A stretch of 64,000 nucleotides of DNA from Tetramitus jugosus (Eukaryota; Protista; Heterolobosea), in contig OW569376.1 of NCBI GenBank assembly GCA_937625935.1, forward strand, positions 62,001 to 126,000, written 5' to 3'. Position numbers and translations under genes: made by a program. Shown one piece after another: positions 38,787-64,000 of the stretch; the first letter of the stretch is position 1; every line of letters begins with the position of its first letter. The notes under the pieces were generated by a model. That model was not told where the DNA came from. It ran no database searches and saw nothing but the letters and a program-made list of their open reading frames with translations.

Positions 38787-41700
38787 TCACTCCATGTTGT
38801 TACAGAGCATGTTATAGAGCAGTTGCATCTGAATTTCCATTCTATTCCAAGCTGAATGACCAGTGTATCCTGGGAAAGGAAATTCATCTGGTCTCCAAAT
38901 TCCAAGTGAGAACCCATCTAGTACCTTGGCACCGATAGCAGTCAATTTTTGGATTGCATAAGGGTTCAAGAACATAGATTGAGTGTGGAAGTTCGGAGTG
39001 AACCACACCACCTTAATACCTTGGTCAATAAATCTCTCCTTGATTACGATCGCCAATTTATCAATGTTCTCCTCCCATCTAGACATCAAACTGCTTCTGC
39101 TATCCCAATTTCCAGCTGATACAACGATGAGTTTGACGCCATGAGCGCTAGGATCTTTGAATTGTTTCCATCTATCGAGAGTTGTGAATGCATCACTTCC
39201 ATTCTCAACCGAATCCAATCCATTGATGAACATGAATCGAATCAAAGCTCCTTCTTCCTTTTGTGAATAGAATGATTTAAAGACAGGTTCTGGATCTGAG
39301 GTCTGTTCCTTGAGACCAACCCAAACTTTTCTTTCAACATGAAACCTAAAAAGACCTCCGTAACGTCCTCCCGCAATCGCACATGATGCGCTTTTGCCCT
39401 TGCAAGGATTCTTTTCACCATGGAGTAATAAAGTCATGAGTCGTCTTGAGTTGGAATCTCCAAACCATAAGATGTGATCCCAATGCTTCGCCAAACATTT
39501 CCTTGCTTCGCTCAAGGAGTACATCTTCAGTAAGTATTTGTTATGGATGAATACTTGGTTTCTATCAACGAATCCATTTGACCAATTTCTGAAAGTAGTC
39601 TGTTGCATCACTGAATTCAAATCGGATAGTTGCTCTTGTTGAGCATATGAATCAAGCGCATACTTTTGGTTCACATATCGTCCATCAAGCACATACGTCT
39701 CATTAGAAGGAGCATGAAGGATATTGGGAAAGAGAGGTCTCTTGTGCATCGTTCTCATGATTTCTGAGTCAGATTGAAAAACTGTGAATTGGTTCCCTGT
39801 GAAAACAGTACTCGATTGATTCACATTAATATCTCGAGGTAATGCCGCACTCCTTGATTGTTGAGCAACTCCAACATCCAGCATGTACTGACCTGCTTCA
39901 AACACTTGAAATCCTGCACAAAAACAATCTGTTCCACAAGGTGTAAAGAGAAAACCAATATCAGCAAAATCAGATCTTGCCCTCCCATACAACACTGTTA
40001 CCGTTTCAGAAGGCTTTAGCTTACCCAAGAAGGTTGCACCACCTTTGATACACAATGTAACATTCGATCCAGAATCAACTCCACTTGTCCAATCAATGTT
40101 TGAGAGATAGAGGGAGAGAGGTTGGGGAGGAAGTGAAGAACACCTGGCTATGATATCCTCTTCTGTCAAGGGAACAATTAAAGGCTCCGACGATTTCGCC
40201 ACAGAATTGATAGATTGAAGCTGCATACTATGCAATGCATAACCAAATATCACCAATGATACTAGCGTACATGAGACACCCACAACTAACTTTACCATTT
40301 TCAACACCCTTTTAGAGTCCTGGATGTCTTGTGCTGGGTCTTTGGCAATAAATTTAGAATACGCTTCTCTAAACTTGACTTGTTTCACACCTCTGGACCA
40401 CAAACACAAACTCATGTTCAACAATCCAGAATAATTGTCGAACAATAGTATTGATCCGAGTGAGAAACAAACTGAAAATACTCCCCAGAGCATACTCCCT
40501 CCAACATAGCCGACCTTCTTACTTCCTTTTTCATCCAGTTGGAACAGATATCTGAAGAGTGAGAGTGAAATGAAGGCTGATGAGACAATCACCAAGCAAA
40601 TCAGTGAAATGTTGAAAATTCGGTCGTATGACGATATCCAATGCTCATGTTTCTTCCCTATCAGAAAGATGAAGAGTAGTACCAAAGCTAGCACAATGGA
40701 ACAAGTGAGTACCAATGATCCCATCAGAGGAGCACTCGTTGTGACTTCAATCAGTGATAACATTTTTGTAACTAAATACAGAGAAGAGAAGACGAAGACA
40801 ATCACCTTGAATCTTGTCCAAATCTGTTGATCAGTGTGCTCCTCCGAAGCAAATGCATCCCTCAAGTCCATGGTTAAGTTGAATAACAACTTGGAGCAAA
40901 AGATAAACAATACAGATACCACTAACATATTCAATACTGGATGTCCAGGTATTAGAACGAACAACTTCTTGGCATTCGCTGCCAAAAACAGATGATGTTG
41001 CAACAAGTATGTCTCCAGTGTCATCTTTCCAAAGTGACGGAATGCTGCGCTGTATCGATTCCTGAGTAATGCGCTATAGTTTCTGATTAGAATGTAGGCA
41101 ATGATGGGAATGCAAGTAAAATATGGATGTAAAGAGTTGTAAACCAACTTGTCTTTCGGTAGATGCATAATATACCATGCCCATGCAAGAAATAGAGTAA
41201 AAACTGAACCCAAAATCACTCTCTTGTATACTTTTTGTCCTGGTTGCTGTTCTGTCTTCTGTAACCAATTGACCATCATCGGAAAGTTGAGTGCAAAGAT
41301 CATTCCAAACAGTGCAGAGTAGTGATCCAGATAGGTTCGAAAATAAAACTCGTGTGCATCTCTGCTGAGAGGTATCAAACCAAACAAAGTCAACATGTTC
41401 TTCATAACACCGGGGACATCCCATATGACGAAAATGATGAGAGCCAACAGGAAAATCTTCAACCGAGGGAACCACTTGGTTCTATTGTACTTGTGCTGAA
41501 CAAACATTGTCGCATAAACAACTAAAAAGTATACTGTGTGCAATGGAACAATGTAATACAGCATGGGAGAATTATTGACTGTCAAACAGAGAAAGAGAGC
41601 AGAGAAATTCAGTCTCCACATGAGTCTCCACACTCTTGCAATCGAATAATCCTTCTTAACAAAAAAGAATGAAAAGTTTCCAAATCCAGTCATCCACACA

Positions 41701-42374
41701 TAACACGAAACCAGAACACGAACAAAATCATAGGCTTCCTCTGCCTTCGTATAGTGATAAATGATGAAAATGTACTGCATCCATCCTTTCCACTCCTCTG
41801 TTTGATCTCTGTTGAGCAACAAGTTGCATTCCAGTTCTTCTTTCCTCTCTGCTTCCTCACCATCCTTAATCTTGACAATGGTCACCAAACCCAGCACAAA
41901 GAACACAACAATCAGAATGACAAAGTTGGATCTGTGATACTCCTTGATGGCATGATCAAAAATGGGCTTTTTCTCAGCAAACCACACCACCAATAGCAAA
42001 GCACCCAAAGCAATTAGTCTCCTTGAAATAAATAGTAATTGTTCAACAAAAGTTTGCTTCATCTTTTTATCCTCTTGACGTTGGTTAAGAGATTCCTCAG
42101 TCTTGGACAATTCACTTGTTGTTTCTCTGTTGATATCCTCAGTATCAATCAACTCTTGTTCATCATCACAATCAGCATCAATAGAACCAATGATTGGTTC
42201 ATTGTTCCGTAGCAAAGTATAAGAGCTCTCCTTGTTGCTGCTGTTTTTGTTCTTGTTGTCATTCCGTTGAAAAGAAAACTTCCTTTGGACGAGTTGATAA
42301 GCTTCTAATGCAATCCATAAGAATCCATTGGTGCAAAAGAGAAGTGATAATAGCACTTGACCGTTAGTGAACAT
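38787..42374 (-). CDS. Cas1p/RWA-family multi-TM O-acetyltransferase fused to a C-terminal SGNH/PC-esterase domain (copy 1)
   Basis: LNRDQTEEWKGWMQ, RVLVSCYVWMTGFGNF, WRLNF, MLYYIVPLHT, FRTYLDHY, GKMTLETYLLQHH; C-terminal LWFGDSNSRR, SAGNWD, VVWFTP and TGH. Confidence 0.9.
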   Translation of the reverse strand: MFTNGQVLLSLLFCTNGFLWIALEAYQLVQRKFSFQRNDNKNKNSSNKESSYTLLRNNEPIIGSIDADCDDEQELIDTEDINRETTSELSKTEESLNQRQEDKKMKQTFVEQLLFISRRLIALGALLLVVWFAEKKPIFDHAIKEYHRSNFVILIVVFFVLGLVTIVKIKDGEEAERKEELECNLLLNRDQTEEWKGWMQYIFIIYHYTKAEEAYDFVRVLVSCYVWMTGFGNFSFFFVKKDYSIARVWRLMWRLNFSALFLCLTVNNSPMLYYIVPLHTVYFLVVYATMFVQHKYNRTKWFPRLKIFLLALIIFVIWDVPGVMKNMLTLFGLIPLSRDAHEFYFRTYLDHYSALFGMIFALNFPMMVNWLQKTEQQPGQKVYKRVILGSVFTLFLAWAWYIMHLPKDKLVYNSLHPYFTCIPIIAYILIRNYSALLRNRYSAAFRHFGKMTLETYLLQHHLFLAANAKKLFVLIPGHPVLNMLVVSVLFIFCSKLLFNLTMDLRDAFASEEHTDQQIWTRFKVIVFVFSSLYLVTKMLSLIEVTTSAPLMGSLVLTCSIVLALVLLFIFLIGKKHEHWISSYDRIFNISLICLVIVSSAFISLSLFRYLFQLDEKGSKKVGYVGGSMLWGVFSVCFSLGSILLFDNYSGLLNMSLCLWSRGVKQVKFREAYSKFIAKDPAQDIQDSKRVLKMVKLVVGVSCTLVSLVIFGYALHSMQLQSINSVAKSSEPLIVPLTEEDIIARCSSLPPQPLSLYLSNIDWTSGVDSGSNVTLCIKGGATFLGKLKPSETVTVLYGRARSDFADIGFLFTPCGTDCFCAGFQVFEAGQYMLDVGVAQQSRSAALPRDINVNQSSTVFTGNQFTVFQSDSEIMRTMHKRPLFPNILHAPSNETYVLDGRYVNQKYALDSYAQQEQLSDLNSVMQQTTFRNWSNGFVDRNQVFIHNKYLLKMYSLSEARKCLAKHWDHILWFGDSNSRRLMTLLLHGEKNPCKGKSASCAIAGGRYGGLFRFHVERKVWVGLKEQTSDPEPVFKSFYSQKEEGALIRFMFINGLDSVENGSDAFTTLDRWKQFKDPSAHGVKLIVVSAGNWDSRSSLMSRWEENIDKLAIVIKERFIDQGIKVVWFTPNFHTQSMFLNPYAIQKLTAIGAKVLDGFSLGIWRPDEFPFPGYTGHSAWNRMEIQMQLLYNMLCNNME
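39163..42374 (-). repeat. Arm of a >=3.2 kb inverted duplication whose partner is 60758-64000
   Basis: Direct comparison shows long near-identical runs. The shadow ORFs 41074-41475 / 61690-62091 and 41690-41878 / 61287-61475 are also near-identical. Confidence 0.95.
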
Positions 42375-50548: not shown

Positions 50549-52981
50549 TTACTTATTCTTCTTTGTTAGTAGCTCCATTTGTCTCATTTTCTCAATAGTG
50601 GCCCGATGTTGTTTGACCAAGAATTCAACAACACTGGTCAAGTGCAACAAACCAAACATGATCGAGCACATGAAAGTAGTCAAGAAGGCAAACAGAATCG
50701 GAGGGCAATACATTTGCGCAACGCTGTCCAAGAATGAGCCGATATCCTCAATAAGGTTGGTTCTAGTTTCGTCATCTTGAATAAAATAAGGCAACAGCTT
50801 GTTTTGTAAAATACCATGACCTTCAGACAAATTCTTGTTGTGCGCTGGATAGATATCATCATCGTCCTGAGCAGTTTGTGATCCTTCTTTGCTCAAATCG
50901 ACCCAATTGGCCCAGTCAATACTTATATTAGCTGGTTTAGCTGTTGGAGATCGAATCAATCTGGGCCATTCCTCATTCTTTGCCTTCATGATGGAGATTG
51001 TTGTTCTTCCGGCACCTGGCGTGATCGTGTAGTCTAATGGATCTACTTGTCCGTACAGTTCAATGTTCAACAGATACGAGTTACCGTTGCTCGACACAGC
51101 CTTGAACAAGAGCTGATGATCACTTGTCACAAACAACTCTGTCTTCTCCAAATTTGGTAGCTCAATAGTAAAGGTTAGTTTGTCAATACGTTGACACCAT
51201 TTGATAGGTGCAACCAAGTGGTCCTCGGTACCCGCCAAAAACTTGTCCACTCTCGCCTTATCCAACTCCTTCTCTGCCACAGTCTCTGGTTTTATGAGCG
51301 CTCTTCTCTTGTAGCAATACACCTTTGGTTGCTTGAGTACTTTGAGTGCTTTGAAATCAACACCACTGTACCCTTCTTGAGTATCAATGACGGCAAATAC
51401 CTTATTGAATCGCTTGTCAACCTCGTCCATGGCTTCTGGATTGTTGCCACTGAGGACATGAGAGAATGTACGATAGTTCACATTCTTTTCCTGCTTGGAA
51501 TATTTCCAGGTTGAATTGAACTGCAAAAAGCGTGTGACACCATTCATTGTCACATGGCTATCCATGTGCACATACTTTGGTTGATGATTGTCCTTCTCTC
51601 GATTATACAACTTGTTGAGTGCATCTGCTCCATAGTAGTTGGATGAACTGGCATAGAGGAAGAACAAGGAGATAATAAGTGATCCCAACAGCACAAGTGG
51701 TATCAAGTATGATACGAGCTTTGATCTTCTCTTCAATTGCACAATGCCTACTGCAGCAGTCAGATTGAAGAGTGGCAGGGCAAAGAATATGAATCGAAGT
51801 TCCTTGTGAGGCAGCATGGAATACAGTGCAACAAATAGTACTGCACTAATAAAATATGGCAATACGCTTTGCTTTCGATATCGATGGAAAATTATGCCGA
51901 ATGGGATGAAAACAAGCGCACCCAACAATGATCTTGGCAGTGCCGATGTAAAGTACCAATGTGGAGAATAAACACCCCATTCATGACTCTTGTTCATCAC
52001 TGTATTGTAATAGAGTACTTCACCTTCGGGCCAAACCATTCGTTGCCAAAAGTACGTATCAACAATAAATGAAACAAAGATACCGAATGACACGGATGTC
52101 AATCCAACAGCAACACCAGAGATCAATCCTACTCTTCTCGTCAACAAACAAACAACAGCAATAGGAGCGATAAACACGAGTAGATCAGAGCGAAAAATTG
52201 CAGCAGCGACACCCAATACAGCAAACATGTGCACATATTGATCACGCAACCAATATCCCAACCCAACAAAGGCAAAAATCAGAGCAAACACATTGGGTAA
52301 TGGTCTTCCCATGTAAAACATTAAATGGAATTGACACATGACCAACAGTGCATACCAAATCGACACGTGATACCCAGTGTGTTGAGTTCCATCCTCCTCA
52401 TTCTCATCAGCACCCACATGACCACTCTTTTGCTTCCTTGTGACTTGTTTCACCTTGTTCATTACTTGATCAATGTCATCATCAGCAGCACCAGTAATCT
52501 CTTGACTAAACTTGATTGTAATACCACTGCGAAAGAATCCTTGAGCACAAATGGAAAAGACACCCAGAATGAATCGCACCAGAATCAAACTCAAGAATTT
52601 TACACTTGCTTCGTTGGCAACAATCCACTGAAGCAATTTAACAAACGGAGCAGCAATAATCGACACAAAAATCGATCCAATAAACGTTCTAGGAACAACA
52701 CCAGGGAACTCAAAGTGATCAAATCGATCCAATCTTGTCATGTGAAACAACAAGTCATGCATGGCCTGAGTATTGAAGCTCTCTTCCACTTTTGTGTAGG
52801 GAACAATGAAAATGTACACTGTGAGCTGTATGAGCATGAATACGTCCAAAAAATCAATTTGAGGCATCATGAGCAAGCGAACTTGTCGCCACAGCATTTG
52901 TTGAACTTGTTTTTGACGTTCTTCTTGCTGTTTGGGTTGATCAACAGCAGAAGGAGGACTGGTCGTGGAGGTTTCCGTCAT
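50549..52981 (-). CDS. ALG12: ALG12 alpha-1,6-mannosyltransferase (GT22) fused to a p23/CS domain, TM helix and KKxx
   Basis: PYTKVEESFNTQAMHD, DHFEFPGVVPRTFIG, QFHLMFYMGRPLPN, WPEGEVLYYN, LPHKELRF, GVTRFLQ; then IKWCQR..WPRL..IDWANWVD. Confidence 0.92.
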   Translation of the reverse strand: MTETSTTSPPSAVDQPKQQEERQKQVQQMLWRQVRLLMMPQIDFLDVFMLIQLTVYIFIVPYTKVEESFNTQAMHDLLFHMTRLDRFDHFEFPGVVPRTFIGSIFVSIIAAPFVKLLQWIVANEASVKFLSLILVRFILGVFSICAQGFFRSGITIKFSQEITGAADDDIDQVMNKVKQVTRKQKSGHVGADENEEDGTQHTGYHVSIWYALLVMCQFHLMFYMGRPLPNVFALIFAFVGLGYWLRDQYVHMFAVLGVAAAIFRSDLLVFIAPIAVVCLLTRRVGLISGVAVGLTSVSFGIFVSFIVDTYFWQRMVWPEGEVLYYNTVMNKSHEWGVYSPHWYFTSALPRSLLGALVFIPFGIIFHRYRKQSVLPYFISAVLFVALYSMLPHKELRFIFFALPLFNLTAAVGIVQLKRRSKLVSYLIPLVLLGSLIISLFFLYASSSNYYGADALNKLYNREKDNHQPKYVHMDSHVTMNGVTRFLQFNSTWKYSKQEKNVNYRTFSHVLSGNNPEAMDEVDKRFNKVFAVIDTQEGYSGVDFKALKVLKQPKVYCYKRRALIKPETVAEKELDKARVDKFLAGTEDHLVAPIKWCQRIDKLTFTIELPNLEKTELFVTSDHQLLFKAVSSNGNSYLLNIELYGQVDPLDYTITPGAGRTTISIMKAKNEEWPRLIRSPTAKPANISIDWANWVDLSKEGSQTAQDDDDIYPAHNKNLSEGHGILQNKLLPYFIQDDETRTNLIEDIGSFLDSVAQMYCPPILFAFLTTFMCSIMFGLLHLTSVVEFLVKQHRATIEKMRQMELLTKKNK

Positions 52982-53140: not shown

Positions 53141-54763
53141 ATGAATCGATTGGTCATGTGGAGTGCACGTCGATCATTGAACAACAACAATTGTCGTTCA
53201 TTGGTCATGAATGGACGCAACAACAATAGAATCCATCACCACCTTCATTGCCAACCTCAATCCCTGCTTCATTTCTTCCACACTACAATTCCCGCCAAAA
53301 ATCACCCGATGGCTGCATCTACGGCGGCGGCGGCAGCGCAAGAAACACAAAAATCACAACAAGGACAATCAACGTCTGACAACAACAAGGAAAATGAACA
53401 AGAAAAAAAACAAAAGGAACAAGCTGAAAAACAACAAAAGAAACAAAGGAGAAGAAGACGTGCTGCAAAGCTATTGCTTTTCCTCGCTGGTTCCTATGTT
53501 GTCATCAAGACTTTTGCCTATATTGTTCTCATCTCTGAAGACAATGCCTTTGTCATGAACAACTCTGCTGAATCTCTCATGAAAAAGCTTCCATTGAATG
53601 CTCTGTCCAGAACATGGGGTTGGATCTATTCAACTGAAGTTCCAGAAGTCCTTAGACCACTGTTTTATCAAATTTATGCATGGTTGTTTGATGCCAATTT
53701 GGATGATGTGGAATTGCCATTGAAACGATACAAGAGTCTTCAAGATTTCTTTACTAGAAGGCTCAAGAAAGATGCTAGAGTAGTGGATGAAAAGAGTGAG
53801 ATTGTGAGTCCAGTGGACGGAAGAGTCATGTCATGTGGTGTCGTTCATATTAACAAGGACTCTGAAACAGTTGTGGTGGAGCAAGTTAAGGGCATTACCT
53901 ATCCATTGCATCATTTCTTGGGTTATGGAATGAAGGATGCCATGTTGGCATTGAGTACAGCTGCTACTGATGTGGTCAAGGATGAGAAGAGTGAGGAAGC
54001 AAATTCATCATCTCCACCTTCTGAGCACAGTTATTTTTTGAGTGATGAGAAACATGAGAAGACGTTGCATTATTGTGTCCTGTATTTGGCACCTGGTGAT
54101 TATCACAGATTTCACTCTCCATGTGATTGGAAAGTGGAGGAGAGAAAGCATGTGGCAGGTTATTTGTTCCCTGTGATGCCATTGTTTGTGAAAACATTGA
54201 GAGGTTTGTTTGCTCTGAATGAACGTGTAGTGTTGCATGGCAAGTGGAATCATGGTGATTTTCATTATGTTTTGGTCGGTGCGACCAATGTTGGTGGAAT
54301 GACACTGTACTTTGACAATACGCTCAACACGAATCTGAAGAGAAAGAAGGAACCGAAAAAGAAGGCTTCCACACAAAAGAAGGACCAGAAGAAGACTGAA
54401 GCGAAATCTGAGACTGCAGAACAAGAGAAAACAACCGAAGAAGCTGCACATGAAATTACTGTAGTTTCCACTGCACCTTCTGGAGAAGTCGTTACGCAAA
54501 CAAAGGAAGAGATTGGAACAAAGAACAACCAACACGCTTTTGACCAATATTTGCAAATGAGAAGACGGGAGTACGCAAGAGGAGGAATTTCACTGTCGAA
54601 AGGAGAAGACATTGGATATTTCAGGATGGGAAGTACAGTTGTCATGTTATTCGAGCACTCTGATGCAAAGTTCGAGTGGGGCATAAAACCAGGTGAGAGA
54701 GTGCTCTTGGGTGAGCCTCTATCAGCGGACAGACGGAGCGAGTTCCTAACTCAAAGAAAGTAA
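53141..54763 (+). CDS. PISD: Phosphatidylserine decarboxylase proenzyme (PSD1/PISD type)
   Basis: LPLNALSRTWG, FFTRRLK, SPVDG, EQVKGITY, YLAPGDYHRFHSP, NERVVL, VGATNVG and autocleavage motif FRMGSTVV; presequence-like N-terminus and TM. Confidence 0.95.
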   Translation: MNRLVMWSARRSLNNNNCRSLVMNGRNNNRIHHHLHCQPQSLLHFFHTTIPAKNHPMAASTAAAAAQETQKSQQGQSTSDNNKENEQEKKQKEQAEKQQKKQRRRRRAAKLLLFLAGSYVVIKTFAYIVLISEDNAFVMNNSAESLMKKLPLNALSRTWGWIYSTEVPEVLRPLFYQIYAWLFDANLDDVELPLKRYKSLQDFFTRRLKKDARVVDEKSEIVSPVDGRVMSCGVVHINKDSETVVVEQVKGITYPLHHFLGYGMKDAMLALSTAATDVVKDEKSEEANSSSPPSEHSYFLSDEKHEKTLHYCVLYLAPGDYHRFHSPCDWKVEERKHVAGYLFPVMPLFVKTLRGLFALNERVVLHGKWNHGDFHYVLVGATNVGGMTLYFDNTLNTNLKRKKEPKKKASTQKKDQKKTEAKSETAEQEKTTEEAAHEITVVSTAPSGEVVTQTKEEIGTKNNQHAFDQYLQMRRREYARGGISLSKGEDIGYFRMGSTVVMLFEHSDAKFEWGIKPGERVLLGEPLSADRRSEFLTQRK

Positions 54764-54793: not shown

Positions 54794-57337
54794 TTAGTCC
54801 CAGTCATCGTCATCTTCGCTGTCGAATAGATCATCATCATCGTCATCCTTTGGCATTCTCTCCAATTTGGCAATCTTCTTTGAGATCATATCCAGCAGGA
54901 CGTTGCTCTGGAGACTCTGACGCCTGAGAGGGAAGTCCTCCAGATCGAAAATTGTCTTGTTCATCTCTTCCTCGGCAGCTTGCGCTTCCAAATGTTTGCG
55001 TCTTGCTACTAGTTGCTCGTGCAGTTTTGAGGCAATTGGAGATGAATTCGTTAGATGGTCAGATGTAGACTTGTCCTCAGCCTTTTTCAGCTTTGCGAAT
55101 GCAATCTCTGACAGCAGATTGTTCATTGCTTGCTTTTGTTGCGTTGGATCCTCCTCGATGATCAATGGTACATTTTGAATCCTGGTCGACAAACGCTTCA
55201 TCATGATTCTGTTCATGTCACTATTCGCTGCCTTCTCACTTGAATGTTCCTTCTCAATCTGGTCCAACTCTTGTTCAATCTCTGATATTCTTTGCACTTC
55301 CTGTTGACACACTCTGTCTTGGAGAGCCTTGAGCATTTGCAACTCTTCAACCTTGATCTGCTTCTTTAGTTCCCTTAGCCTTCTTCTCTCCTCCTTTTTC
55401 ATCTCTTGATCCAAATTCTTTCGCTTCAGTTCCTGCATCTCCATGTACTCTCTCTTTTGGGACAATTCTTCCTCCAATGACTTGATGTCTCTCTTGAGCT
55501 GCTTCTTCTTGTACTCTTCATCGGCCTTTAGCTTGAGGTCAATGTTCTTCAGACGTGCTGCTTGCTCCGATAGCAATTGGTCTTCAAGATACCTTCTCAG
55601 TTCCTCTTCTTCGTTACGCATCTGCTTCTCGAATGTAGTCTTCTTGGCACTGAGTTCACTTTCGACTCTTCGTCTCTCTGCTTCTGCCTCTCTCATTTGC
55701 TGTTCCTTCTTTTGTTTAATGTCCATCATGGCTGACACTCTAGCCTGCTCTTGTTCCATTTCTCGCTTCTGCGTGGACAATAGTAGCTCCTGTTTTCTCT
55801 GCTTCTCCTCCTTGCTCATTTGCTTCTCCAGTTGCTTCAACCTCTCTTTTTCCTCCTGAGCCAGCTTCTCTTCTAGTTGTTGCTTCCGCTCTGCCTCCTT
55901 CTTCTTCAACAACTTTTTTTGCATTACAAAATTCTTTTCCTCCATCTCCAACTCTTCCTTTAGCTGTGTTAGCTTTGATTTTCTGTTCAGTTCGATTCTT
56001 GATGCAATTTCAGCTGCTCTCTCCTCTGCAATCCTCTCCAACTCTTGTCTGTACCTTCTCTGGACCATACTACTCCTGGAAGCAAGTGCATCTGCTGATC
56101 CACCACTGCTATTGTTGAAGGAGACATTGTTGGCTGAGATTGGGAATCCACTTCCATCTTCAAACACATACTCCAGACAGAGGAACACTCTGCCAACAAC
56201 AATGGTTTCATTGAGAGATGACTGAGTCGATTGTTCCTCGTCTTCAGAGATGACAAACGAGATACTCTTTCCTTGTGCACCATCACCATTGTTGTTGGCA
56301 GATTCAGCAGCAGCAGCATTCTTTCTCATCTTAATCTTGAACCAGCCTTCCGTCTTGAGAGCGTCATTGTTGTGGTTGACCTTTGGTGGATCGACCAAGG
56401 TGACTCTGGTGAGCGCTTTCACACTCTTTGATTTCACAAGCTTTCGTTTCAACACTTTGCTCTCTTCCTCGTCCTCTCCCGCGGTTTTTGTCGTCGGAGA
56501 ATTGGCATCATTGTATTTTACAGTCACGACATCTTCGAGTTCGTCAACGTTGAGAAACACGTAGAGATCAATGGGGAATTTAGGGCAGTCAAACACAAAC
56601 TGCTCATTGAAAATGGGAGCATCCGTCTTGTATTTCTTCATGGTTGAAAAGCTCTGGAATGACGTATTGAGTGCAAAAAAGCTCTCATACGTCTTCATAA
56701 TCATCTTTTGATGATTTGTCTTTTGATTGCTACTAGCACTACTCTCAATTGGAAACAATACATTCATGTCGAGTTGTGCCTCCACGACAGACACTTGTAA
56801 CTTTGTATACACAGTGTCCAATTTCAATAAAGCTTTTGTGGCGGAGCTACGACTATTGTTGTTGTTGTTGTCTCCACTCGTATCGTGATGACTACTATTG
56901 TTATTACTATTGTTGTTCGCTGATGCTGATGCTGCCGAGGTTGAATAATTGTTCAAGAGCTTAATGGCACCACAAGCTCCAATAATCGCCTCCATCCAAT
57001 CTTCTCTCTCCTGTTCCGTATGAGTGGAAAAGTTGTGCGACGAGCAGGGTGTAATCAACAAAAATTTAAATTTTCGATCCTTCTTGTTCGTTTTGGCCTT
57101 CATGTGCTTGGGTTGGAGTCGAACATTGTCTAGTGCGATACTGCCGAGTGGTTGTGAGTCCAATGGTCCCTTAAAATAATAGAGACATGTTTTTGTGAGA
57201 ATGAACCATCGACTCTTCCATCCCTTCATCTTGTACATGAACGAACTGGTTTTGTGATTGGTTTTGAGCGGTCTTTTGAGCAAGTAGCCCTGTTTGACCG
57301 CAGTGTTCTTAATGTTTGTCAGAACAGATGACTCCAT
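54794..57337 (-). CDS. PH + C2-like + long coiled coil + C-terminal WH2-central-acidic (WCA) protein
   Basis: PH (VKQGYLLKR..WKSRWFILTKTCLYYFK..EREDWMEAI); C2-like (LQVSVVEAQ..PIFNEQFVF..VGRVFLCLEY); E/K/Q-rich coil; LLSEIAFAKLKKAE; terminal DDDDDDLFDSEDDDDWD. Confidence 0.85.
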   Translation of the reverse strand: MESSVLTNIKNTAVKQGYLLKRPLKTNHKTSSFMYKMKGWKSRWFILTKTCLYYFKGPLDSQPLGSIALDNVRLQPKHMKAKTNKKDRKFKFLLITPCSSHNFSTHTEQEREDWMEAIIGACGAIKLLNNYSTSAASASANNNSNNNSSHHDTSGDNNNNNSRSSATKALLKLDTVYTKLQVSVVEAQLDMNVLFPIESSASSNQKTNHQKMIMKTYESFFALNTSFQSFSTMKKYKTDAPIFNEQFVFDCPKFPIDLYVFLNVDELEDVVTVKYNDANSPTTKTAGEDEEESKVLKRKLVKSKSVKALTRVTLVDPPKVNHNNDALKTEGWFKIKMRKNAAAAESANNNGDGAQGKSISFVISEDEEQSTQSSLNETIVVGRVFLCLEYVFEDGSGFPISANNVSFNNSSGGSADALASRSSMVQRRYRQELERIAEERAAEIASRIELNRKSKLTQLKEELEMEEKNFVMQKKLLKKKEAERKQQLEEKLAQEEKERLKQLEKQMSKEEKQRKQELLLSTQKREMEQEQARVSAMMDIKQKKEQQMREAEAERRRVESELSAKKTTFEKQMRNEEEELRRYLEDQLLSEQAARLKNIDLKLKADEEYKKKQLKRDIKSLEEELSQKREYMEMQELKRKNLDQEMKKEERRRLRELKKQIKVEELQMLKALQDRVCQQEVQRISEIEQELDQIEKEHSSEKAANSDMNRIMMKRLSTRIQNVPLIIEEDPTQQKQAMNNLLSEIAFAKLKKAEDKSTSDHLTNSSPIASKLHEQLVARRKHLEAQAAEEEMNKTIFDLEDFPLRRQSLQSNVLLDMISKKIAKLERMPKDDDDDDLFDSEDDDDWD

Positions 57338-60757: not shown

Positions 60758-63700
60758 ATGCTCACCAACGGACAGATCTTGTTGTCCCTTCTTTTTTGTA
60801 CCAATGGATTCGTATGGGCTTCGTTAGAAGCTTTTTACCTCGTCCAGAAGAATCTCTCTTTTAGTTCAAACTCCATCCACAACAACAGCAAAAAGAAGGG
60901 TTCTTATTCTTTGATTCAAAACAACGAACCAATCATTGGTTCTGTCGATGCTGATGATGAACAAGAGTTGATTGAGAGTAAGGAAATCAACAGAGAAACA
61001 AATGAAGTTTATGAGTTAGTTGCCCTCACTGCTTCTCCTAATCCTGAGGAGATAACAACCTCTCTTAACCAAAATCACGCTGTCCAAGAGAATAAGATTA
61101 AGACGAAACGAACCTTTGTTGAACAATTACTATTCATCACAAGAAGATTAACTGCTTTGGGTGCTTTGCTATTGGTGGTGTGGTTTGCTGAGAATAAGCC
61201 CATTTTTGATCATGCCATCAAGGAGTATCACAGATCCAACTTTGTCATTCTGATTGTTGCATTCTTTGTGCTGGGTTTGGTGACCATTGTCAAGATTAAG
61301 GATGGTGAGGAAGCAGAGAGGAAAGAAGAACTGGAATGCAACTTGTTGCTCAACAGAGATCAAACAGAAGAGTGGAAAGGATGGATGCAGTATATTTTCA
61401 TCATTTATCACTATACGAAAGCAGAGGAAGCCTATGATTTTGTTCGTGTTCTGGTGTCGTGTTATGTGTGGATGACTGGATTTGGAAACTTTTCATTCTT
61501 TTATATGAAAAAGGATTACTCGATTGCAAGAGTGTGGAGACTCATGTGGAGACTGAATTTCTCTGCTCTCTTTCTCTGTTTGACAGTCAATAATTCGCCC
61601 ATGCTGTATTACATTGTTCCATTGCACACAGTCTACTTTTTAGTTGTTTATGCGACAATGGTTGTTCAGCACAAGTACAATAGAACCAAGTGGTTCCCTC
61701 GGTTGAAGATTTTCCTGTTGGCTCTCATCATTTTCGTCATATGGGATGTCCCCGGTGTTATGAAGAACATGTTGACTTTGTTTGGTTTGATACCTCTCAG
61801 CAGAGATGCACACGAGTTTTATTTTCGAACATATCTGGATCACTACTCTGCACTGTTTGGAATGGTTTTTGCACTCAACTTTCCAATGATGGTCAATTGG
61901 TTCCAGAAGACAGAACAGCAACCAGTACAAAAAGTATACAAGAGAGTGATTTTGGGTTCAGTTTTTACTCTATTTCTTGCATGGGCATGGTATATTATGC
62001 ATCTACCGAAAGACAAGTTGGTTTACAACTCTTTGCATCCATATTTTACTTGCATTCCCATCATTGCCTACATTCTAATCAGAAACTATAGCGCATTACT
62101 CAGGAATCGATACAGCGCAGCATTCCGTCACTTTGGAAAGATGACACTGGAGACATACTTGTTGCAACATCATCTGTTTTTGGCAGCGAATGCCAAGAAG
62201 TTGTTCGTTCTAATACCTGGACATCCAGTATTGAATATGTTAGTGGTATCGGTATTGTTTATCTTTTGCTCCAAGTTGTTATTCAACTTAACCATGGACT
62301 TGAGGGATGCATTTGCTTCGGAGGAGCACACTGATCAACAGATTTGGACAAGATTCAAGGTGATTGTCTTCGTCTTCTCTTCTCTGTATTTAGTTACAAA
62401 AATGTTATCACTGATTGACGTCACAATGAGTGCTCCTCTGATGGGATCATTGGTACTCACTTGTTCCATTGTGCTAGCTTTGGTACTACTCTTCATCTTT
62501 CTGATAGGGAAGAAACATGAGCATTGGATATCGTCTTACGACCGAATTTTCAACATTTCACTGATTTGTTTGGTGATTGTCTCATCGGCCTTCATTGCAC
62601 ACTCTCTCTTCAGATGTCTGTTCCAACTGGATGAAAAAGGAAGTAAGAAGGTCGGCTATGTTGGAGGGAGTATGCTCTGGGGAGTGTTTTCAGTTTGTTT
62701 CTCACTCGGATCAATACTATTGTTCGACAATTATTCTGGATTGTTGAACATGAGTTTGTGTTTGTGGTCCAGAGGTGTGAAACAAGTCAAGTTTAGAGAA
62801 GCGTATTCTAAATTTATTGCCAAAGACCCAACACAACACATCCAGGACTCTAATAGGGTGTTGAAAATGGTAAAGTTAGTTGTGGGTGTCTCATGTACTC
62901 TCGCATCATTGGTAATTTTTGGATATGCATTGCATAGTATGCAGCTTCAATCTATTGTCTCTGTTGAAAGATCATCCGAACCTGTTGCTCTTCCCTTGAC
63001 TGAGGACATTATCGCTGACAAGTGCTCATCACTTCCTCCTCGACCTCTCTCCCTCTATCACGCAAATATTGATTGGACAAGTGGAGTTGATTCTGGATCG
63101 AATGTTACATTGTGTATCAAAGGTGGTGCAACCTTCTTGGATAAGCTAAAGCCTTCTGAAACGGTAACAGTGTTGTATGGGAGGGCAAGATCTGACATTG
63201 CTGATATTGGTTTTCTCTTTACACCTTGTGGAACAGATTGTTTTTGTGCAGAATTTCAAGTGTTTGAAGCAGGTCAGTACATTCTTGATGTTGGAGTCGC
63301 TCAACAATCGAGTTCTGCAAAATTTTCACGATACATTAATGTGAATCAATCGAGTGTTGTTATCACAGGGAAACAATTCACAGTGGTTCAATCTGATTCA
63401 GAAATCATGAGAACAATGCACAAGAGACCTCTCTTTCCCAATATCCTTCAAGCTCCTTCTAATGAGACGTATGTGCTTGATGGACGTTATGTGAACCAAA
63501 AGTATGCGCTTGATTCATACGCTCAACAAGAGCAACTATCCGATTTGAATTCAGTGATGCAACAGACTACTTTCAGAAATTGGTCAAATGGATTCGTTGA
63601 TAGAAACCAAGTATTCATCCATAACAAATACTTACTGAGGATGTACTCCCTGAGCGAAGCAAGGAAATGTTTGGCGAAGCATTGGGATCACATCTTATGG

Positions 63701-64000
63701 TTCGGAGATTCCAACTCAAGACGACTCATGACTTTGTTACTCCATGGTGAAAAGAATCCTTGCAAGGACAGAAGTGCATCATGTTGGATTGTTGGGGGAC
63801 GTTACAAGGATATCTTTGGGTTTCATGTTGAAAGAAAGGTCTGGGTTGGTCTCAATGAACAGACCTCAGATCCAGAACCTGTCTTTAAATCATTCTATTC
63901 ACGAAAGGAAGAAGGAGCTTTGATTCGATTCATGTTCATCAATGGATTGAATTCTGTTGAGAATGGAAGTGATGCATTCACAACTCTCGATAGATGGAAA
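60758..64000 (+). CDS. Cas1p/RWA O-acetyltransferase-SGNH fusion, copy 2 (3'-truncated by the window; missing from the ORF track)
   Basis: ATG 60758 (MLTNGQILLSLLFCTNG). 3243 nt (1081 codons) to the window end, finishing in frame at ..TTLDRWK; near-identical to the reverse complement of copy 1. Confidence 0.9.
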   Translation, partial: MLTNGQILLSLLFCTNGFVWASLEAFYLVQKNLSFSSNSIHNNSKKKGSYSLIQNNEPIIGSVDADDEQELIESKEINRETNEVYELVALTASPNPEEITTSLNQNHAVQENKIKTKRTFVEQLLFITRRLTALGALLLVVWFAENKPIFDHAIKEYHRSNFVILIVAFFVLGLVTIVKIKDGEEAERKEELECNLLLNRDQTEEWKGWMQYIFIIYHYTKAEEAYDFVRVLVSCYVWMTGFGNFSFFYMKKDYSIARVWRLMWRLNFSALFLCLTVNNSPMLYYIVPLHTVYFLVVYATMVVQHKYNRTKWFPRLKIFLLALIIFVIWDVPGVMKNMLTLFGLIPLSRDAHEFYFRTYLDHYSALFGMVFALNFPMMVNWFQKTEQQPVQKVYKRVILGSVFTLFLAWAWYIMHLPKDKLVYNSLHPYFTCIPIIAYILIRNYSALLRNRYSAAFRHFGKMTLETYLLQHHLFLAANAKKLFVLIPGHPVLNMLVVSVLFIFCSKLLFNLTMDLRDAFASEEHTDQQIWTRFKVIVFVFSSLYLVTKMLSLIDVTMSAPLMGSLVLTCSIVLALVLLFIFLIGKKHEHWISSYDRIFNISLICLVIVSSAFIAHSLFRCLFQLDEKGSKKVGYVGGSMLWGVFSVCFSLGSILLFDNYSGLLNMSLCLWSRGVKQVKFREAYSKFIAKDPTQHIQDSNRVLKMVKLVVGVSCTLASLVIFGYALHSMQLQSIVSVERSSEPVALPLTEDIIADKCSSLPPRPLSLYHANIDWTSGVDSGSNVTLCIKGGATFLDKLKPSETVTVLYGRARSDIADIGFLFTPCGTDCFCAEFQVFEAGQYILDVGVAQQSSSAKFSRYINVNQSSVVITGKQFTVVQSDSEIMRTMHKRPLFPNILQAPSNETYVLDGRYVNQKYALDSYAQQEQLSDLNSVMQQTTFRNWSNGFVDRNQVFIHNKYLLRMYSLSEARKCLAKHWDHILWFGDSNSRRLMTLLLHGEKNPCKDRSASCWIVGGRYKDIFGFHVERKVWVGLNEQTSDPEPVFKSFYSRKEEGALIRFMFINGLNSVENGSDAFTTLDRWK

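Follow-up and report, generated by a model that had tools for sequence, protein, structure and literature searches.

A heterolobosean protein with PH and C2 domains, a helical rod and a WCA-type tail, predicted to be an Arp2/3 nucleation-promoting factor of an unnamed subfamily

The window, which is the whole 64,000-nucleotide stretch of Tetramitus jugosus DNA analysed here, contains a gene for an 847-residue protein composed of a PH domain, a C2-fold domain, a helical rod and a tail homologous to the WCA region of Arp2/3 activators. Alignments and structure modelling place these predicted elements in a fixed order in five species. We consider the protein, with a probability of about 0.7, to be a class I nucleation-promoting factor (NPF) that is restricted to Heterolobosea and belongs to an unnamed new subfamily, its activity being predicted. 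The sequence-only reading had proposed a new class of NPF. This was overstated, and a new subfamily with the class I (WCA) mechanism, a new variant, is the more fitting description because new front ends on WCA tails have precedent in WAML and WAWH. The features of the gene are as follows.

54794..57337, minus strand: single-exon coding sequence, 847 residues plus TAA; unbroken translation, start position matching the orthologues
56972..57298, minus strand: PH domain, residues 14-122; Pfam PF00169, E 5.5e-19
56810..56968, minus strand: Asn/Ser low-complexity linker, residues 124-176; unconserved, 8-13% identity
56138..56809, minus strand: C2-fold domain with a long β insertion, residues 177-400; fold modelled on orthologue P0002
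55247..56059, minus strand: helical rod, residues 427-697; helix in the AF2 model, about 50% E/K/R
55160..55174, minus strand: single Pro724 at the site of the orthologues' polyproline tract, from the alignment with orthologues
55076..55126, minus strand: WH2-like motif W, residues 738-754, LLSEI...LKKA; aligns with the WH2 motifs of WAVE1 and N-WASP
54989..55036, minus strand: central helix C1, residues 768-783; WASP-type spacing, invariant L772, L776, R779 and R780
54908..54988, minus strand: first acidic segment or linker, residues 784-810; eroded here, whereas three orthologues show a clear SD-acidic run
54860..54907, minus strand: second amphipathic basic helix (helix 2), residues 811-826; C-like or WH2-like
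54797..54847, minus strand: terminal acidic segment with Trp846, residues 831-847; acidic run, Trp invariant

All motifs quoted in the sequence-only reading are present in the 847-residue translation. In an oligo-dT metatranscriptome of a close strain, one contig spans 54797-57096 with no intron, and the neighbouring gene lies on a different contig. This fits an unspliced transcript; contigs give no proof of the level of expression. Acidic residues and a Trp form the C-terminus of one of the 38 open reading frames in the window, and among 142 PH-containing matched proteins such an end is confined to the two orthologues.

The gene is convergent with a phosphatidylserine decarboxylase gene (53141-54763, plus strand), and 30 bases separate the two stop codons. 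A further gene (50549-52981, minus strand) encodes a fusion of an Alg9-like mannosyltransferase with a weak CS domain. The locus sits between the arms of an inverted repeat (39165-42065 and 61100-64000), which are at least 2.9 kb long, 95% complementary and 19 kb apart. No synteny was found between the family loci.

Four full-length orthologues were identified: P0001 (Logan), P0002 (JGI), L023 and Naegleria fowleri FDP41_008159. All four, at 26-49% identity, keep the order of PH, C2, rod and WCA-like tail as well as the terminal Trp, and identities within the family are 26-56% over the C-terminal two thirds. L023, reached through the fragment P0046, is an intron-containing gene; it is spliced and was compared exon by exon. 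FDP41_008159 is annotated only as a PH-domain protein and was found on rescanning the HMMER matches, by which an absence of the family from Naegleria was rejected. The N. fowleri orthologue P0158 has an extra hydrophobic, β-like stretch between the rod and the polyproline (residues 930-1030), which Pfam does not match. After helix 2 it also has an acidic patch with a second Trp.

In N. gruberi, SOD and IMPDH genes lie as mirror copies on either side of the gene model NAEGRDRAFT_81996 (L038:7887-9227). The model holds the PH domain and the first C2 strands, fused to a piece of GAPDH, and the rest of the protein is absent from the locus examined, which looks like a rearrangement or a misassembly. 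A search of 1.84 billion representatives returned, among the 150 matches listed, no others that extend beyond the PH domain. Word-based searches recovered two orthologues, gave nothing for the tail piece and missed Naegleria; metagenome scans for homologues gave no match. The known range, as judged from the window protein and the Naegleria members, is Heterolobosea.

The PH domain has its nearest solved relatives in the PH domains of PLEKHA5 and Grp1/cytohesin. It carries the residues K21...K41-x-R43...Y53, of which K21, K41 and R43 are invariant in the family. K-Xn-(K/R)-X-R is the signature of phosphoinositide-binding PH domains (PMC3216653), and with this signature the domain is predicted to bind lipid. 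The following Asn/Ser linker varies in length between strains. For the C2 domain, a Pfam search of the 847-residue protein gave no match, and orthologue P0002 passes the Pfam C2 cut-off at 23.2 bits. The top Foldseek matches of the P0002 model (pLDDT 68) are all C2 domains, and a wide structural search returned C2 domains at Z about 10-11. Both the Pfam match and the model uphold, together with the PH assignment, the PH plus C2-like N-terminus that had been proposed. The calcium-loop aspartates are unconserved by eye: there is no SDPY-type motif, and the acidic loop positions vary.

The rod was described in the sequence-only reading as a coiled-coil linker of about 300 residues. Its helical character holds; its length is 271 residues, its period is 15 residues and the heptad signal is weak, leaving the heptad unclear. 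In each of the five rods tested, the strongest period is a lag of 15 (z 2.3-5.2). The rod may form a coiled coil or a stable single helix, and the dimer suggested in that reading is no more than a possibility. The full-length AF2 model is poor (pLDDT 55, three sequences) and served for secondary structure alone. Between the rod and the tail, a PPP run immediately precedes W in each of the four full-length orthologues, and none occurs in the 847 residues of the window protein. The remark that the protein has no polyproline is therefore right for this member and wrong as a family trait; the alignment points to a loss in the window protein only. The WAVE proteins of plants likewise have no proline-rich region before WCA (PMC3298513).

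In complete members, the tail runs in the order polyproline (except in the window protein), LKK-type motif, C1, acidic, helix 2, acidic, Trp. Its motifs are 41-81% identical to those of the two nearest orthologues and the intervening linkers 7-22%; in the close strain, the amino-acid changes in the tail are confined to linkers among the variants listed. The two amphipathic basic helices noted after W are recovered as C1 and helix 2. C1 fits the C-helix pattern of three hydrophobic residues four apart, then R/K, then a hydrophobic residue, and its spacing is that of the N-WASP residues facing the Arps (PMC7274804). The terminal Trp is retained by the orthologues, being invariant in all five complete tails, at about 60 residues from C1, a distance greater than in WASP or WAVE.

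A Pfam WH2 match, which had been suggested as a check, was obtained for no family member, tail or tail piece; the search also misses the true WASP of the same genome, so that the miss is uninformative. The tails were also compared by profiles. A four-tail profile against the PDB ranked WAVE1 (E 0.035) and N-WASP (E 0.093) first. With the N. fowleri tail added, the five-tail profile placed four N-WASP chains at ranks 1-4 among 177,635 PDB sequences (E 0.0027-0.048), and the alignment is in register over W, C and the acidic part. The PDB E-values are marginal and owe part of their strength to acidic residues, and the four chains are one protein and not independent. In a six-frame scan of its own genome, the best non-self match of the four-tail profile was the true WASP (WH1+PBD; E 3.6e-5), which was missing from the matches of the five-tail profile.

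Composition-keeping shuffles served as controls. WASP scores 22.7 bits against the family profile, compared with a shuffle maximum of 10.6. For the N. fowleri tail, which did not contribute to the profile, the score is 32.3 bits and the shuffle maximum 12.1. The WASH tail of the genome is a weak match (5.1 bits, 11 of 300 shuffles as good). Conversely, when C1 was scored against a profile of the genome's WASP, CRIB-WCA, SCAR and WASH tails, 0-1 of 300 shuffles did as well in each of the five members. The in-register matches to N-WASP and WAVE1, the C1 shuffle test and the invariant Trp support the WCA-type tail claimed from the sequence.

These comparisons bear on the least probable of the explanations considered, in which the protein would be a PH-C2 coiled-coil membrane scaffold unconnected with actin and the tail a compositional mimic. 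Such mimicry would account for the lack of a Pfam WH2 match, for an ESM Atlas similarity to a WHAMM/WH2 cluster (0.79) that lies within the chance range, and for profile scores inflated by acidic tails. It does not sit well with four ordered motifs conserved across proteins 26-56% identical, with fits that are controlled by shuffling, or with WASP matches ranked at the top in two different databases.

Helix 2 is the best-conserved element of the tail, with 81% and 62% identity to the two nearest orthologues. Against the C profile, none of 300 shuffles is as good in P0002 and in the paralogue L018; in the remaining members, 37, 12, 13 and 120 of 300 are. A PDB search with helix 2 and the acidic end alone gave no NPF and one chance match. 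Judged from the alignments, helix 2 is a real element under selection, with a weak fit to C profiles; the duplicated central helix proposed in the sequence-only reading is no more than a possible account of it.

The W motif is more variable. The Kollmar WH2 pattern is matched exactly by P0002; the window protein agrees at five of six helix positions and in the LKKA, with a short link between them, and the helix is degenerate or looser in P0001, L023 and N. fowleri. W is thus the least canonical motif, with a full fit in P0002 only, and the W-less, CA-like unit of helix 2 and acidic Trp is more conserved than either W or C1. Both observations favour the main rival to our reading, an Arpin-like membrane-targeted inhibitor or tether of Arp2/3. 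In such a protein the C-like helices and the acidic Trp would occupy the NPF sites, a weak W would deliver no actin, and the tail would compete with WASP and SCAR. Arpin-type inhibitors are marked by a CA region lacking a working WH2 and by binding at the Arp3 site alone. Arpin inhibits through a C-helix and an acidic segment, and small differences in the C-helix set activator against inhibitor (10.1101/2021.10.30.466598). However, every one of the five members has L-[KR]-[KA]-[VTAI] ahead of C1 at the spacing of a WH2, polyproline lies ahead of W in four of them, C1 has the N-WASP spacing, and the related protein L018 has a canonical WH2 in a matching layout. We judge this inhibitory role unlikely.

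The start of helix 2, a WH2-like LLxxI, and the 15-residue period of the rod fit another explanation, in which W, C1 and helix 2 would be three WH2-like monomer sites, oligomerised by the rod, in a regulator independent of Arp2/3 that resembles tandem-WH2 nucleators or VASP-type elongators. A 15-residue repeat is of the type known from the VASP tetramer. Nevertheless, the residues after helix 2 are acidic, not basic, at the place where WH2 has LKKV, and the explanation leaves unaccounted for the invariant acidic terminal Trp, a mark of Arp2/3 binding (PMC7274804). We regard it as very unlikely.

The genome also encodes WASP, a CRIB-WCA protein, a SCAR-like protein, WASH, a WIP-like protein and ARPC3. 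Since a conventional set of NPFs is already present, the window gene would be an additional one. A second candidate for a non-canonical NPF is L018 (L018:2546-5338, G000:C3), a 930-residue protein with SHOCT, a disordered region, a rod, polyproline, a canonical WH2 that Pfam detects, C, an acidic segment, a second helix and an acidic Trp-Phe end. Its rod aligns with that of the window protein (hhalign 98%, which coiled-coil composition may inflate). As its tail has a similar layout, the two-helix tail occurs with two different front ends.

Other proteins with related motifs were observed. A 2871-residue protein (L019:1307-9919, G000:C23) combines an RME-8_N domain with C-terminal polyproline, WH2, a C-like helix and a short acidic end with Phe. 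L008:1351-3066 (minus strand) combines an Abi-like N-terminus with two repeats, each of polyproline, WH2 and a C-like element, and has no acidic tail. The CRIB-polyproline-WCA protein (L021:952-1962, minus strand) is an open frame without WH1, either WAWH-like or missing a 5' exon, and the SCAR-like protein (L022:1007-2596, minus strand) has a WW domain and two WH2 motifs. L010:1411-2520 is WIP/verprolin-like, with N-terminal polyproline and WH2; WIP has been reported absent from Naegleria. L020:393-2645 has a SHOCT-like start, WH2 and TPR-like repeats.

For a class I activator of this architecture, the following mechanism can be proposed. The PH domain would bind phosphoinositide, probably 3-phosphorylated or PI(4,5)P2, and a calcium-independent C2 would add membrane avidity. 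In the absence of CRIB and WHD, lipid would take the place of Cdc42 or the WAVE complex in recruitment. The rod, which would measure about 40 nm as a continuous helix, would space and possibly oligomerise the tails, and the polyproline, where present, may gather profilin-actin. W would then bind G-actin, and C1 would dock at the barbed end of Arp2 or Arp3, in the cleft. The acidic Trp at the C-terminus would enter the pocket of ArpC1 or Arp3, leading to branch nucleation. Helix 2 may be an extra ligand of an Arp or actin cleft, or a regulatory element that is autoinhibitory or partner-binding. Feeding cups, endocytic puncta or endosomes would be the likeliest setting.

Arp2/3 activation needs actin delivered to both Arps (PMC7274804). 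With one W per chain, two chains would still be expected, brought together by rod oligomerisation or lipid clustering. In a tentative and rather doubtful elaboration, one chain might carry two Arp2/3-binding units, C1 with the first acidic segment and helix 2 with the acidic Trp, which would fill both NPF sites, or of which one would activate and the other act as a brake. PH-C2 would sense membrane lipid directly, and spacing or valency would be set by the 15-residue-repeat rod. If true, this would be a new route to the two-NPF requirement, independent of Rho-GTPase switches. The conserved extra helix also offers a natural variant for probing how the two NPF sites of Arp2/3 are used.

Outside the lineage of animals, fungi and amoebozoans, Naegleria is the main model of phagocytosis and of crawling by means of actin, and Arp2/3 is needed for both (Velle and Fritz-Laylin). 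A published cytoskeleton table for Naegleria lists two WASP, two WAVE and WASH. A further conserved activator, if true, would change this list, which has WASP, WAVE and WASH only, and would be a candidate for Arp2/3-dependent puncta or feeding structures. Velle and Fritz-Laylin also refer to five WH2 proteins of N. gruberi without naming them. The supplements examined do not contain model 81996, and no paper naming the protein or the Naegleria accessions was found in a search that left Veltman and Insall 2010 and Velle Table S2 outside. The family was probably overlooked because its WH2 escapes Pfam and because the gene model in N. gruberi is a broken one.

Kollmar 2012 (PMC3298513) defines the families WASP, WAVE, WASH, WHAMM, WAWH and WAML, and a PH domain is mentioned nowhere in its text. 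Pfam gave no match to WH1 or CRIB (GBD) in the window protein and its orthologues, and found them in L028 and L021. WAHD is likewise unmatched in the window protein and matched in the genome's WASH. The N-terminal WHD of WAVE/SCAR is not present, the N-terminus being PH and C2, which also account for the region where IMD (WAML) and WMD (WHAMM) gave no Pfam match. The earlier placement outside the defined families is thus borne out by the lack of WH1, CRIB, WHD, WAHD and IMD.

With WASP and N-WASP the family shares the orthologues' polyproline, the WH2-like motif, the hydrophobic/Arg spacing of C and the acidic tail with Trp. It differs in that PH, C2 and rod replace WH1/CRIB, a helix and a second acidic segment are added, and the Trp is distant from C1. 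The W-C-acidic region aligns to WAVE1, and helix 2 resembles the end of the WAVE1 C-helix by eye, a resemblance without statistical support in the PDB search; unlike WAVE/SCAR, the family has no WHD. WASH has a similarly long spacer from C to Trp and a C of the L-x3-L-x2-RRK type, as in C1, and the tail of the genome's WASH also has a second hydrophobic stretch ahead of its Trp. In contrast to WASH, the window family has no WAHD, and the WASH tail is weak against the family profile. In stramenopile WASH, with two VCA, and in Trichomonas WASP, with tandem VC, W is part of what is repeated, whereas here only a helix and an acidic segment are added.

WAWH types II and III are likewise WCA proteins confined to certain lineages, and they contain a long region that is coiled-coil or charged; WAML combines a lineage-restricted WCA with a built-in membrane domain, IMD; their front ends are GBD/WAID or IMD, and none is described with PH and C2 (PMC3298513). 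Arpin resembles the family in its C-like helix and acidic Trp terminus, but lacks WH2 and polyproline, and its globular domain is of another kind. CARMIL and the myosin I proteins of fungi and amoebozoans join a PH-like lipid-binding module to acidic or CA Arp2/3-binding sequences and so provide a precedent for lipid targeting. In contrast to these, the window protein has no LRR, capping-protein motif or motor domain, and its WCA is terminal and complete.
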